The translations under genes were made by a program, and so were the position numbers. 50,431 bases of DNA from Macrostomum lignano (Eukaryota). Location: NCBI GenBank assembly GCA_002269645.1, contig NIVC01004327.1, forward strand, positions 1 to 50,431, in the 5' to 3' direction. Position 1 is the stretch's first letter. Each line of letters starts with the position of its first letter. Below are positions 10,730-20,782 of the stretch, piece by piece. The notes below the pieces were generated by a model that did not search any database, was not told where the DNA came from, and worked only from the letters and a program-made list of their open reading frames with translations.

Positions 10730-13700
10730 TTATAAGTCAATAGTCTTTTGAAGGCTGACTGCACTGTCGATCATCTCGGACTCGTCGGTGGTCGCGGCGG
10801 CGGCAACGGAAGCGGATGAAGCAGCCTCCTGTTGGGCCTGCACTTTCGATTGAGCGCCTCGCAACAGACGGGAGTTGGCGGCTGCCCCGGCCAGGTAGGC
10901 AATCAGTTCGATGAGTTCGCACGCGGTTAGCACTGACACCCCCGACCACAGACCGAGCGCTCCTGAAAAATCAATAATAATCGATAATATTGGTTGGATA
11001 CGAGTGGACAGAGGCCAAGGAAGGATACGCACCTCCCATGTCGGCCATCAGATCCTTGATAGTGTAGCCAGGCTCTTCAACTATTTCTTCTCCGAACTCT
11101 CGAGCCGCTGTTACCTGTTCGAAAAAAATCGATATTTAATGTTTGTTATGCATAAATATCCCTTTCTGCTTCTTTGCACTTGATTGGTTACAGAAATATC
11201 AGTTTTCATTGGCTGAGACTGCAAATTATTTCCCTCTACTATCTATTTCCTACTCGCCGCTGATTGGCCAAGAACAGCCGATTGATTCTCTCTATCTCAT
11301 AGTCGTCGCTGATTGGCTGAGAATGGTCATTTGATTATCTCTATCTCATAGTCATCTCTGATTGGCTGAGAACGGCCAATTGATTCTCTCTATCTCTCAA
11401 AGTCGTCGCTGATTGGCTGAGAACGCCAATTGATTATATCTATCTTATAGTCGTCGCTAATTGACTGAGAATGGTCAATTGATTCTCTCCATCTCATAGT
11501 TGTCGCTGATTGGCTGAGAATGGTCAATTGATTCTCTCTATCTCATAGCCATCGCTGATTGGCTGAGAACAGCCGATTGATTTTCTCTATCTAATTGGCT
11601 TAGAAACGAACCAGCAGAATAAACGAAAAAATCTATGAATTCTCACAGTAATGCGAGCGAATTGCCTCTCTAGCGACAGAAGTTTTTGCTGAAACTCCAG
11701 CATCTGGTTGAGATCCCTCTTTTCAGCTGGCTGTCTGGATAGTCGCTCGGCGCGCAAGTAAGTAGCGAATATGCCGGCGATGGCCCTCGAGCCGGTGGGA
11801 TTATTGGGATAGCCGAGCGACATTGCCAGCAGCTTCATCCAGCCTACAGCCGACTCTCTCTCTAGGCCGGGCCACGGGCTGCCCGCCTGGCTGATGGAGT
11901 AGCTTAACGTCTCGCACGGAGGCGGGCATTTCGATCTGGCCTCATGTTCGTATTGCAGCAGCTTGGCTGTTTCGGTTGCTAGGCAACGCTCGGTCCAGGT
12001 GAAATTGTGTCCAGTGCCACTCTGATTGAAGCAGAAACTACCGATGAGGCTGGCTGGCAACGGCAGGAGAGCCGTCGGAAGGCAGCCGCAGTTTTCTAAG
12101 AAACGACGCGCCTTATAAGCATCGATGCAGTCGGTTTGGGTGCCGGATTTGAAGATTAGCCGATTGTTAATTCGACCTCTGTTTTTCGGGTATTATTGAT
12201 ACTTTATATGTACATGAAGCTACTCAAAGTAGGTGAAAAGCGTTTTTAGAACAATAAATAGAAATTATGAGATTATTCTTAGTTTTTCTACTGTTAGTAG
12301 GGCAAAAGCATATTTTAATACAATTTCACAAACAGAAAATTAAAAGATGCCTCACTCTTTAATTTCTCGCTTTCTGTTCAGATCAGCGAGAATATTTGCC
12401 AGCGCGTCAATCTTTTCAGTCCAAGTTGTGGCCTCACGGATTTCTGTCATGTTTACGAGTTCCCTGCCGATTTTAATTATTTTTAATGCAAAGTTATTTT
12501 TAATGCAAAGAGTGCTACTGTCAAGATTACATATGAATCTTATTAATCCCTAATTGCCTCGAAACTTCGCCAAACCACCTGGTCTTATACTATCAATATA
12601 AATAATCAATACAGTCTCACGCCATTCTAATCACAATTAACTCTATGGTCTCACTTGATCGACTCTAATCTCATTGCCTTCTAATTCACCCCATTCTAAT
12701 CCTATCCGAATATGGTGTCATCCCAGTTTAACCTAATCCCAATCTAATCTCATCACAATCTAATCTCATCCCAATCTAACCTCAATTCAATCTAATCTCA
12801 TCCCAATCTAATCTCAAACCATTCTCATCACATCCAAATCTAATCTCATCCATTCCCATCTGACCCGTTCTAATCCCACCATGTTCTAACCGGATCCCAA
12901 TATAATCTCGCCCTATTCTGATCTCATCCTATAATTATAATCCCAATATCAGCATTATAATCTCCGTCTCCAGCATCGCACTCATCCACAATTTTCATCA
13001 CTCTCAGACACCCCCAAGAAGCGCTCACACTTGGCTGCTGGCAGTTGCATTCCACGACTGCACAGCGTACACCACGGCTTGTCTGTCCTTCTCCATCTGG
13101 CAGTCTCTCACTGGCGGCTTCGGGAATCTCACAGTGGAGTCGTAGGTAAGCCGCAGTTCCACGTGCTGACCGCGGCCTACTGTCAGGGCTTGCTGCGACC
13201 GAGGGTAGACACCCTCCGGGACTACCATTACCTGGGTGGGGGTTCGTCTCAGTTGCTTTGGATATTGACTGCTGTGCTGCATCTGCTCTGTGCAATCACT
13301 GCCATCTCTATCTGCCATCCTCTATCTGCCATCCTTTATCTGCCATCCTCTATCTGCCATCCTCTATCTGCCATCCTCTATCTGCCATTCTCTATCTGCC
13401 ATCCTCTATCTGCCATCCTCTGCCTTCACTGCCATCTCTATCTGCCATCCTCTGCCTTCACTGCCATCTCTATCTGCCATCCTCTACCCTTACTGCCATC
13501 TCTATCTGCCATCCTCTACCCTTACTGCCATCTCTATCTGCCATCCTCTATCTGCCATCCTCCACCCTCACTGCCATCTCTATCTGCCATCCTCTACCCT
13601 TACTGCCATCTCTATCTGCCATTCTCTATCTGCCATCCTCTACCCTCACTGCCATCTCTATCTGCCATCCTCTACCCTCACTGCCATCTCTATCTGCCAT

Positions 13701-19700: not shown

Positions 19701-20782
19701 AAGAAATGCAGGCGACTCGATTTGAGAACGGCCTGGCGTTGGCGGCGGCGACATCTGTGCCTGATGACACGGGCAGGTAGCTGGAGGAGTACACCACTGC
19801 CCAGCTGCGGTTGCCAGTGTACTCTTCACCGGCGACTGTGGTTCGACATTGGCTGGGATGGGCTGCGTAGCGAAAGCAAAATAAACCCTTTATAAAGTGT
19901 ATTACTATGCATATCGGCGGTAAACCACAATGAGTTATACGGATAAATTATTTTGAAAATTTTTAAGAAATATTTTTTCGATACATATCGGTATTTTACA
20001 CCGACCAAACAAATAAAAATTGTTATTACTACTAATAATTGGCTGTCATACGAGCGTATTAATATTTTTGTCAAAACCAAGACTTCAAGACTTCATTAAT
20101 CTTTGTTAGCGCGCGGATTCGAACCCGGGCCTTTCGGAACTATTCTGCCTTAAAGACTTTGGGATTAAAATTAACTAAATAAAGTCACTAGCGCCTGTAA
20201 ATACATGTAGTCTAACGTTGAACAATCTACTCTATAACTACTTACGCTACATATCGGTAGGTGGATATCAATCTGCCACTCACCCGAGCTTTTAAACACC
20301 ATCGCCTGCACCAGCGCCTCCTCCGCAGCTATGAACGCGTCCGACAGAGCCATTGCAGCGTCGCTGAATTTCGTCTTCTTGCTACCATTGCCAGCCTCAA
20401 AGTCTTCCTCAATATCGAACTCGAGCTGCCGCTCCCGGCAGATCCGATTGCATGAGCTGCTGCGCATCACCGAGGCGCTATCGATCGGCTTGCTCACTCG
20501 GCTCATCGGGACAATATCGCTTGGACAGAAGTACAAATCAGGCAGCTTGAAAGGCAGCGACTCGGTCAGACTAGTTGTCAATGGCGTGCTGACGAAATGA
20601 GCAACCAAGGTGTACACGTGATAGGTGAAACCGGTGTAGGTGCCAAGCAGGAAACATAGCCACACTGTGCGACCGAATCTGCCGGTCTGTGCACCGAATC
20701 TGCCAAGTCCGTGGGCAGTTGTGTAGTCGCAGAATCGGCGCAGACTGCTACTCACTGAGGGTGCAGTGGTGTCCGGACTCAT
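10730..20782 (-). CDS. DEG/ENaC (ASC family) channel subunit, ~1078 aa, with inserted kringle-like (x2) and WSC domains
   Basis: Exons: 20284-20782, 19518-19862, 18783-19100, 18285-18413, 16201-16425, 15985-16123, 15282-15376, 14536-14916, 13029-13287, 11647-12178, 11033-11114, 10730-10962 (3237 nt, frame intact). Motifs: FCDYTTAHG (HG motif), TM1 RTVWLCFLL, LIACSVGEATC..DF..HPEFGLC, thumb Cys (DC..NCGC..C..C..CPPPCE), EEPGY..DLMADMGGALGLWSGVSVLT (TM2, GxS filter). Some acceptor choices (19101, 16426, 13288) are less certain. Confidence 0.9.
11195..11595. repeat. ~49-bp minisatellite containing CTGATTGGCTGAG, channel intron
   Basis: Direct reading, ~8 units. Confidence 0.85.
12620..12925. 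repeat. Degenerate CTAATCTCATCCCAAT low-complexity array, channel intron
   Basis: Direct reading. Confidence 0.75.
13295..14533. repeat. 32-bp minisatellite CTCTATCTGCCATCCTCTACCCTCACTGCCAT filling a channel intron
   Basis: Direct reading; source of the three 446-529 aa plus-strand ORFs. Confidence 0.95.
14950..15255. repeat. (CTCTC)n pyrimidine tract, channel intron
   Basis: Direct reading. Confidence 0.9.
15282..16425 (-). other. Kringle-like domain 2 of the channel (3 exons, degenerate)
   Basis: DC..RYTGHVVS (C1), SCQPW (C2), AYCRA (C3), SPVC (C4), ENCVRIKAC (C5, C6); order fits kringles but the loops are long. Confidence 0.62.
15425..15965. repeat. ~22-bp minisatellite CCCCATGTAGCAGTCTTCCGCC, channel intron
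   Basis: Direct reading. Confidence 0.9.
16440..18172. repeat. (TTAG)n / (CTAA)n microsatellite, ~1.7 kb, channel intron
   Basis: Direct reading. Confidence 0.97.
18285..19862 (-). other. Kringle-like domain 1 of the channel, split by the WSC exon
   Basis: Exon 19518-19862 gives QC..GEEYTGNRS (C1), ACISW (C2) and NRCRQP (C3). Exon 18285-18413 gives GPYCF (C4) and TYCNVPYC (C5, C6). Confidence 0.75.
18783..19100 (-). other. WSC domain exon of the channel (phase 1-1)
   Basis: YAGCY...LTQELCAECC..LYTHMGL..QCVCGN...QCFDSCPGNNSQVCGG...VY matches the WSC cysteine pattern. Confidence 0.88.

Follow-up and report, generated by a model that had tools for sequence, protein, structure and literature searches.

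In channels of the DEG/ENaC superfamily, the part that responds to protons, peptides, proteases or force is the finger, a domain that is small and variable; the subunits of solved structure are compact, at ~430-680 residues, with a few helices forming the finger. To our knowledge, Kremen1 and Kremen2 are the only well-studied animal proteins in which a kringle is combined with a WSC domain. Here we describe a gene of the flatworm Macrostomum lignano, predicted to encode a DEG/ENaC subunit whose finger is interrupted by a WSC domain and by two modules, K1 and K2, of probable kringle descent. The gene lies on the minus strand of contig NIVC01004327.1 (assembly GCA_002269645.1), which was analysed from position 1 to position 50,431; this stretch of 50,431 nucleotides is referred to as the window.

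In FaNaCs, the finger helices α1-α3 form the FMRFamide pocket, and the same helices are a gating hot-spot across the superfamily; the corner that they occupy holds ion and protease sites of ENaC, residues for the pH sensitivity of ASICs and the proposed matrix-tether sites of mechanosensitive members (PMC11026163). ENaC needs glycan tethers to the matrix in order to sense shear (PMC6955349). A precedent for extra extracellular Cys-rich modules in a DEG/ENaC channel is offered by the EGAS ('EGF plus ASC') proteins of C. elegans (PMC10424705), although their modules are EGF domains rather than kringles or WSC domains, and no nested domain has been reported in them. In Kremen1/2 (PDB 5fws), the kringle and the WSC domain are tightly packed and jointly bind a protein ligand, the pair forming one rigid binding surface in Kremen1 (PMC5014086). 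Fungal WSC domains are glycan-associated sensors, and for yeast Wsc1 the domain is described as a mechanosensor (7pz2 entry title; PMC9024836); Wsc1 itself is a single-pass fungal sensor which signals via its cytoplasmic tail, without a channel or a kringle.

The channel gene and its core

The window is eukaryotic, with a G+C content of ~44%, and is rich in minisatellites. The channel gene was rebuilt base by base on the minus strand, from 20782 to 10730, as a chain of 13 exons (Table 1). All 13 are bounded by an AG acceptor and a GT donor (the donor of exon 1 follows position 20284), all phases are compatible, and the spliced product comprises 1092 residues with a single, terminal stop. A first-pass annotation, made by a model from the letters alone, had joined 12 exons into a channel of ~1078 residues; a channel joined on the minus strand was obtained again and the boundaries at 20782, 19862, 15282 and 10730 were reproduced exactly, but the exon count and the length were not, mainly owing to an additional exon at 12463-12356 (exon 10). 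This exon was added because M. lignano homologs carry a matching segment: its AG/GT sites and its frame fit, and NMTEIREATTWTEKIDALANILADLN aligned to N-ITELKNTADWAKKTKILESILMSLN of the homolog BOX15_Mlig007204g1 (P0001). The segment is family-specific, lies between the palm strands and the thumb, and is longer than its counterpart in FaNaC or ASIC. When M. lignano proteins were compared with the window by tblastn, one collinear locus was recovered in which 11 of the 13 exons were covered; exons 7 and 10 had no match from any M. lignano query. Alignment of the N-terminus encoded by exon 1 to M. lignano homologs begins at the first methionine.

The spliced protein matched the Pfam ASC profile (PF00858) at 141.2 bits, against a cut-off of 23.6, over the whole fold; the match fell into two stretches flanking an insert, at profile positions 1-93 (residues 17-106, in exon 1) and 148-455. 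A core profile, constructed from five family members with the insert removed, ranked Aplysia FaNaC (7yvb, E 4.6e-22) and Malacoceros FaNaC1 (8on7, 7e-18) highest in the PDB, with ASIC5, ENaC, ASIC1/2 and ppk26 below them, and in comparison with every solved DEG/ENaC structure the stretch that scored best was exon 13 (Pfam ASC positions 428-455). Visible by eye in the spliced protein are the HG motif (TAHGLGR), the first transmembrane segment (TM1, VWLCFLLGTYTGFTYHVYTLVAHF) and the second (TM2, ALGLWSGVSVLTACELIELIAY) with G-V-S, as the first-pass annotation had reported together with the thumb cysteines; the C-x6-C hairpin of the beta-ball and a Cys-rich thumb region are likewise visible. These features, with two transmembrane segments and a GxS filter, are held in common with FaNaC (7yvb, 8on7), ASIC, ENaC, BASIC/ASIC5 and ppk, and across the family alignment the HG motif, the transmembrane segments and the filter are invariant or conservatively substituted. 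From its DEG/ENaC membership, the protein is predicted to form a trimeric, amiloride-sensitive, Na+-selective pore.

A weak Pfam match to CUB_M02D8_5_1st (12.7-15.8 bits, E 0.014-0.12) was also observed, at residues 598-629 of the first model (exon 8, ~14800-14900). A CUB domain hidden in the finger/beta-ball part was considered on this account; the match, being below threshold, was judged to be due to chance.

The finger insert and its modules

Relative to the ASC profile, the protein carries 417 extra residues (167-583) with 22 cysteines, encoded by exons 2-7 and close to the ~415 first estimated. Genome and protein present the modules in the same order: the N-terminal half of K1 with cysteines C1-C3 (exon 2), the WSC domain (exon 3), the C-terminal half of K1 with C4-C6 (exon 4) and K2 (exons 5-7). 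Exons 2, 3, 4 and 5 are symmetric 1-1 exons, and the cassette is both entered and left in phase 1; symmetric phase-1 exons are the classic signature of shuffled extracellular modules. Whereas solved DEG/ENaC subunits make do with their few finger helices, the finger of the window protein is thus predicted to hold three disulfide-rich domains in addition.

The point of entry could be located on a known structure. The junction (..FKSSA / SIVRS..) mapped between M179 and S180 of Aplysia FaNaC 7yvb, 8 residues before F188, and exon 8 aligned with 7yvb residues 180-246; F188 is named α3b-F188 of the finger in the FaNaC1 paper (PMC11026163). The local stretch at the junction scored only 11.5 bits, yet it is collinear with the match of 4.6e-22 and the C-x6-C hairpin follows; for these two reasons the insert is assigned to the subunit's outer upper corner, where, on this alignment, it is predicted to emerge between finger helices α2 and α3. 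The large finger insertion in a DEG/ENaC channel that had been claimed at the outset is thus borne out by both the ASC score and the junction.

Exon 3 alone scored 37.6 bits with the Pfam WSC profile (PF01822), and the full protein 32.6 bits, against a cut-off of 27.8. The domain has 10 cysteines, mostly invariant in seven members, in keeping with the eight-cysteine framework of WSC domains. A seven-member WSC profile matched Wsc1 (7pz2, 6.9e-10) and Kremen1 (2.3e-9) in the PDB, and the insert model of the homolog P0001, rather than of the window protein, gave Wsc1 7pz2 as its top Foldseek match (E 7.5e-4, TM-score 0.61, target-normalised), followed by Kremen1, consistent with a WSC/PAN-like fold. 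The complete WSC domain named in the first-pass annotation is therefore solidly supported, on profile and homolog-model grounds, as a true member of its family. Its best match in both structure and sequence, Wsc1, carries its WSC domain as a glycan-embedded mechanosensor head (PMC9024836); by analogy, carbohydrate binding by the WSC domain of the window protein is putative.

Both flanking modules contain six cysteines in kringle order (YxG; CxxW; (N)xCRxP; PxC; xC; C). Their motifs (GEEYxGN / RYTG, CxxW, CR(x)P, G-P-Y-C / P-V-C and xC..P.C) are invariant across paralogs which are 32-39% identical, and in exon 2 the three cysteines and their motifs are invariant among six paralogs. Against the PDB, a K2 profile of eight members matched the kringles of HGF (1.2e-7), tPA K2 (1.9e-4) and ROR1 (3.3e-4), followed by ROR2, prothrombin, plasminogen and apo(a); kringles made up nearly all of its 68 matches. 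The profile fits the YRGxxxxTxSGxxCxxW motif of the HGF, tPA and ROR kringles, the 'CR' at C3 in exon 6, invariant in the family, aligned to kringle NYCR, and the PWC..C.IPxC motif of tPA kringle 2 and HGF was the counterpart of exon 7. A six-sequence K1 profile, searched with HMMER, yielded two PDB matches, both to kringles and both aligned on the exon 4 part, with non-significant E values of 0.71 and 1.7; a K1 profile of three sequences yielded none.

Both modules were also compared by hhalign with 13 canonical kringles, each of which reached an E value of ~1e-30 or better on PF00051. K1 minus the WSC domain scored 44.9 (94.4%, E 8.7e-8) and K2 scored 47.4 (95.2%, E 2.6e-8), ~14-16 standard deviations above column shuffles that keep the cysteine content and conservation; 200 such shuffles gave a mean score of 11 and a maximum of 22.1, so that none reached half the observed score. 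The alignments were collinear over five Cys-bearing motifs for K1 and over all six for K2. In K1, exon 2 corresponded to kringle positions 18-55, with C2 and C3 aligned to CQxW and NYCRNP, and exon 4 to positions 56-78, with C4-C6 aligned to PWCYT..YCDIPxC; the WSC exon sits exactly between positions 55 and 56. K1 and K2 aligned with one another at E 1e-4, collinear from C2 to C6. Together these alignments suggest that K1 and K2 share kringle ancestry, which we consider likely. As a statement of homology, it is supported that the WSC domain is nested in a kringle-derived K1; our reading is that both modules descend from kringles, with enlarged C2-C3 and C3-C4 loops and a putative kringle core, and that the C3-C4 loop of K1 has taken up the entire WSC domain.

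The K2 module of the window protein has, at residues ~458-478 (exon 5), a 10-residue insertion of the type VSSGATNKDA inside the YTGxxNxTxSGxxCxxW motif, which is present in none of the M. lignano paralogs. An intron shared by K1 and K2 in the C3-C4 loop was considered and rejected, the introns that flank WSC in K1 and the second intron of K2 lying ~5 aligned residues apart and in phases 1 and 2, respectively.

A family in Macrostomum lignano, and the surroundings of the gene

A HMMER scan of 1.84 billion representative sequences with the insert profile of the homologs returned 923 proteins at E <= 0.001, of which only ~8 matched beyond the WSC segment; all of these ~8 were from Macrostomum lignano, and those family members which include both ends also carry ASC. 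It was this exhaustive scan that brought the family to light, word-indexed searches having given two matches for the full protein, two for the insert profile and none for the core profile. At least six M. lignano paralogs, on different contigs, share the order N-terminal ASC, N-terminal half of K1, WSC, C-terminal half of K1, K2 and C-terminal ASC. Identity to the window protein is 32-39% among the six full-length members, each with 22-23 cysteines in the insert, and no database member exceeds 39%; at this distance, the window gene would be a further, unannotated paralog. Members are listed as predicted proteins of the PAA series or of UniProt (A0A267..., A0A1I8...) and include, besides P0001, Mlig006056g1 (P0002), Mlig006398g1, Mlig026586g1 and A0A1I8IV52 (P0006). 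P0001, P0002, P0152 and P0156 have 1052, 1049, 1033 and 1091 residues, lengths similar to that of the window protein, and P0006 has 1362.

Exon layout was compared with one M. lignano gene, P0001, whose locus on NIVC01000440.1 has the same partition (residues 164-265 for the N-terminal half of K1, 265-365 for WSC, 363-~405 for the C-terminal half of K1); a blastn comparison of the window with this locus yielded low-identity repeat matches only, and no close DNA similarity. The NIVC01 annotation was built from RNA-seq with StringTie/TACO and a de novo transcriptome (PMC5730564), and because it was guided in this way, the presence of the cassette exons in channel mRNA has transcript-level backing for the M. 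lignano paralogs. We regard it as highly probable that the window holds one intact 13-exon gene for a DEG/ENaC subunit, with the family and the domain order given here.

The first-pass annotation could not say whether the architecture had been catalogued. It has: the databases list it among M. lignano predictions that are uncharacterised, under the automatic names 'hypothetical protein' and 'WSC domain-containing protein' and with PF01822 plus PF00858 assigned, so that the architecture is not unique to the window. The kringle-like parts and the nesting are unannotated, save in a UniRef fragment of 144 residues named 'Kringle domain-containing protein', and no description of the architecture was found in the literature searched for ENaC/kringle/WSC, Macrostomum degenerins and Mlig gene identifiers.

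Two predictions depart from the common pattern. P0011 (UniProt A0A1I8HMR1) is without C1 and C4-C6 of K1 but keeps C2, C3, WSC and K2; it may be an isoform that skips exons or else a wrongly built gene model, and the unpaired cysteines that it would leave point to the latter. P0006 has a low-complexity N-terminal extension of ~250 residues, an internal extra segment and a C-terminus which departs before the end of TM2, and is probably a mis-joined prediction.

Tandem arrays, different in each case, take up most of several introns in the channel gene (Table 1), and several of these arrays create long spurious open reading frames on both strands. The locus of an M. lignano paralog (L001, at 5701-6000, 14669-16578 and 17476-18088) shows the same pattern, with unrelated units, as minisatellites of ~20-bp period. 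Three further genes were recognised in the window, all on the minus strand. Exons of the xanthine dehydrogenase / aldehyde oxidase type occupy 1489-4177, the gene running off the start of the window. Septin sequence is encoded within 29372-31487 by two large exons, which score 126 and 159 bits with the Pfam Septin profile and have a minisatellite with a 23-bp unit, at 29993-30841, between them. Lastly, a homeobox gene at 42191-42802 and 36342-37022 has its homeodomain apparently split by an intron of ~5 kb; the upstream exon covers profile positions 1-46 and the downstream exon 29-57, and the homeodomain looks NK-like.

Table 1. Exons and intron arrays of the channel gene, and domains of the gene at the start of the window (positions are those of the 50,431-nucleotide window).
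Feature	Position	Strand	Residues; phase	Content
Exon 1	20284..20782	-	1-166	Start codon, cytoplasmic N-terminus, HG motif (YTTAHGLGRF), TM1, first palm strands (LPDLYFCP), finger start
Exon 2	19518..19862	-	167-281; 1-1	K1 N-terminal half: C1 CRTT..GEEYTGN; C2 ACISWNSAA; C3 NRCRQPVGLPL
Exon 3	18783..19100	-	282-387; 1-1	Whole WSC domain, 10 Cys, between C3 and C4 of K1
Exon 4	18285..18413	-	388-430; 1-1	K1 C-terminal half: C4 GPYCFY; C5 TYC; C6 NVPYC
Exon 5	16201..16425	-	431-505; 1-1	K2 part 1: C1 DCL; RYTG; C2 SCQPW
Exon 6	15985..16123	-	506-551; 1-2	K2 part 2: IETADY..AYCRAA (C3)
Exon 7	15282..15376	-	552-583; 2-1	K2 part 3: C4 SPVCP; C5 ENC; C6 IKAC; insert ends
Exon 8	14546..14916	-	584-707	Channel fold resumes; final helix of the finger IRDRIGGANLLRQFG; beta-ball (CSVGEATC, FGLCHRL)
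Exon 9	13029..13231	-	708-774	Palm strands (VMVVPEGVYP..RFPKPPVRDC); within ASC match, covered by P0001 tblastn
Exon 10	12356..12463	-	775-810; 2-2	Helical-looking segment of 36 residues ELVNMTEIREATTWTEKIDALANILADLNRKREIK, 108 nt
Exon 11	11647..12178	-	811-988	Cys-rich thumb region and lower palm; ASC profile positions 292-383; aligned to FaNaC structures
Exon 12	11033..11114	-	989-1015	Last palm strand and pre-TM2 (EEPGYTIKDLMADMGG); P0001 tblastn identity 58.6%
Exon 13	10730..10962	-	1016-1092, stop	TM2 with ALGLWSGVSVLTACELIEL (G-V-S filter), cytoplasmic C-terminus
Intron array	11242-11592			49-bp unit, 7 copies
Intron array	13312-14537			32-bp unit, 39 copies
Intron array	14940-15280			GA-rich run of GGAGAG type
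Intron array	15437-15951			21-bp unit, 23 copies
Intron array	16438-18176			(AGTT), ~434 copies, 1.7 kb
[2Fe-2S]-binding domain	3797-4177	-		94 bits
FAD_binding_5 pieces	2755-3057 and 1489-2031	-		

Origin, proposed mechanism and competing explanations

K1 and K2 are most likely duplicates of a kringle that was already expanded, with the WSC exon probably shuffled into K1 later. Kringle disulfides run C1-C6, C2-C4 and C3-C5; in K1, bonds of the C2-C4 and C3-C5 kind would staple the halves encoded by exons 2 and 4 to one another, and the even number of 22 cysteines (6 + 10 + 6) is in keeping with a rigid head in which all of them are paired in disulfides. The WSC domain would then project from K1, and a disulfide-locked head would sit atop each of the three fingers of a channel. 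We propose that such a head may bind an extracellular macromolecule, most plausibly glycans or glycoproteins of matrix, cuticle or mucus, and that binding or pull would be passed to helices α1-α3, the gating element in FaNaC, ENaC and ASIC; the channel would then act either as a tethered sensor of mechanical stimuli or contact, or as a Na+ channel modulated by a macromolecule. Kremen offers a likeness, in that its kringle and WSC domain act on a ligand together, as those of the window protein may; it carries kringle, WSC and CUB in series on a single-pass receptor, whereas the WSC domain of the window protein is nested, no CUB is present and the host is a channel with two transmembrane segments. 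Derivation of the cassette from Kremen was considered and rejected, given the missing CUB and the lack, among the 60 listed of the 68 K2 matches in the PDB, of any preferential likeness to the Kremen kringle. Coupling of an extracellular macromolecule, via the head, to the finger helices and so to gating is the mechanism best supported by analogy, although we hold it only tentatively. The sharper proposal, of a flatworm-restricted DEG/ENaC clade with a WSC-in-kringle head and a second kringle-derived domain, opened directly by the pull or binding of matrix, glycans or secreted proteins, would be rather doubtful. Taken as a whole, with gene, cassette, kringle ancestry and head mechanism judged jointly, this is nonetheless the explanation that we somewhat favour.

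Four alternatives were weighed, two of which concern what the cassette is and two what it does; they address different questions, and their likelihoods are not meant to be summed. The flanks of the WSC domain may not be kringles at all, but a lineage-specific fold bearing short Cys-centred kringle-like motifs, so that the insert would be a WSC domain plus novel domains. A number of results point this way and weigh against our reading. The Pfam Kringle profile (PF00051, cut-off 34.3) gave 8.7 bits (E 2.8) for K1 minus WSC and no match for K2 of the window protein, whose exon pieces were below threshold or absent, and the best score in the family was 22.7 bits, for the fragment P0014; without WSC, the modules have 145-160 residues, about twice the ~80 of kringles; the K1 profile alone reached only its two non-significant E values; and at the acidic lysine-binding residues of kringles (CRNPDxD), K1 has CRQPVGL and K2 has CRAARVV. 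AlphaFold2 models were made for P0001, which is 39% identical to the window protein, from 7-sequence alignments (predicted local distance difference test 69.5 for the whole insert, 76.5 for K2 alone); K2 was modelled as β-rich, with several long β-strands, and no kringle appeared among the top 50 Foldseek matches in the PDB for either the insert or the K2 model. (The top matches of K2, to a lobe of the RNA polymerase β-subunit at E 0.08-0.4, were not significant and were dismissed.) Closure of the split K1 by disulfides, furthermore, is predicted from the conserved cysteines alone. Given the missing acidic residues, classical kringle ligand binding is not to be assumed; the lysine-binding site is not universal among kringles, however, and its absence bears on function rather than on ancestry. 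Set against these points are hhalign E values of ~1e-7 to 1e-8 at 94-95%, collinear and far above the shuffles, the near-exclusive kringle identity of the K2-profile matches, and the fact that the structure models rest on only 7 sequences; we regard a non-kringle origin as unlikely. The split kringle and second kringle of the first-pass annotation thus hold as profile homology, but not as modules that pass the Pfam threshold or possess the size, the lysine-binding residues or the modelled fold of a kringle, and of the two kinds of search which it had named as able to overturn them, the structure searches found no kringle whereas the profile searches did. The same annotation had offered as a rival that the exons from 19862 to 15282 form a separate nested gene; alternatively, they might be included only rarely, exon 1 joining exon 8. 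The gene model of the window is a prediction from DNA sequence, which also counts against our reading, and since phase 1 applies both to the end of exon 1 and to the start of exon 8, the frame would survive skipping of the cassette; P0011, moreover, is without parts of K1. Yet the cassette shows no evident start codon, signal sequence or stop at either of its ends, its internal phases all match, the domain order recurs in at least six paralogs on different contigs under an RNA-seq-guided annotation, the exon layout of P0001 is the same, and P0011 has the look of a faulty model, leaving an artefact of this kind very improbable.

As to function, the head could instead be the receptor of a soluble ligand, a secreted Cys-rich protein or a large peptide; once bound, this ligand would open the pore or modulate it, and the channel would be protein-gated instead of tethered. 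Among channels of solved structure, the peptide-gated FaNaCs are closest, and in them the finger helices that flank the insert here form the ligand pocket; the kringle and WSC domain of Kremen1 together form the interface with Dkk1 (PMC5014086); and Kremen1 was among the top Foldseek matches of the insert model (E 3e-3). That match, however, has a TM-score of ~0.2 and a root-mean-square deviation of ~17 Å and may be driven by WSC alone, there is no CUB and no specific kringle likeness to Kremen, which is absent among the 60 listed of the 68 K2 matches in the PDB, and the ligand would be hypothetical; a soluble-ligand receptor seems improbable to us. The insert might equally have no part in gating and serve in folding, trimer assembly, clustering, anchoring in membrane domains or protection from proteases, or mark a silent or auxiliary subunit. 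Large sets of paralogs, as found here, are typical of heteromer-forming families, and among invertebrate DEG/ENaCs that carry additional domains, many, EGAS of C. elegans included, produce no currents by themselves (PMC10424705). Silence was also seen in the M. lignano channels tested to date: in oocytes, no peptide-gated currents were recorded from three DEG/ENaCs of a branch related to FaNaC (PMC9234716), which may or may not belong to the insert family. These silent M. lignano channels tell against a gating head. The insert, on the other hand, sits at that corner of the finger from which gating is controlled throughout the superfamily (PMC11026163), and it is as conserved as the core, with all cysteines and several motifs invariant at 32-39% identity, which argues for a specific binding function, though not for coupling to gating. 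Both speak against a non-gating insert, which we likewise judge unlikely. A head that binds an extracellular macromolecule stays our preferred reading, with the further reservation that we know of no ligand specificity for any animal WSC domain.

The locus is of interest for both channel biology and domain evolution, within a restricted lineage. It is a clean example of exon shuffling, in which a symmetric 1-1 exon appears to have put one disulfide-rich domain into the loop of another; in the literature searched, no description of a domain nested in a kringle loop was found. If the insert is merely structural, the family would be a lineage-specific curiosity. How outside force reaches a DEG/ENaC channel, the question of the 'tether', is still debated, and the outer upper corner of the subunit is implicated in the force route (PMC6955349, PMC11026163); three domains of adhesion or ligand type at that corner would constitute a natural experiment. 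The head has been kept in at least six or seven paralogs and can be deleted, swapped or expressed alone, and M. lignano is a transgenic model organism amenable to RNA interference (PMC5730564). Should the proposed mechanism be true, the long-postulated extracellular tether of DEG/ENaC channels would gain a genetically encoded form that can be dissected.

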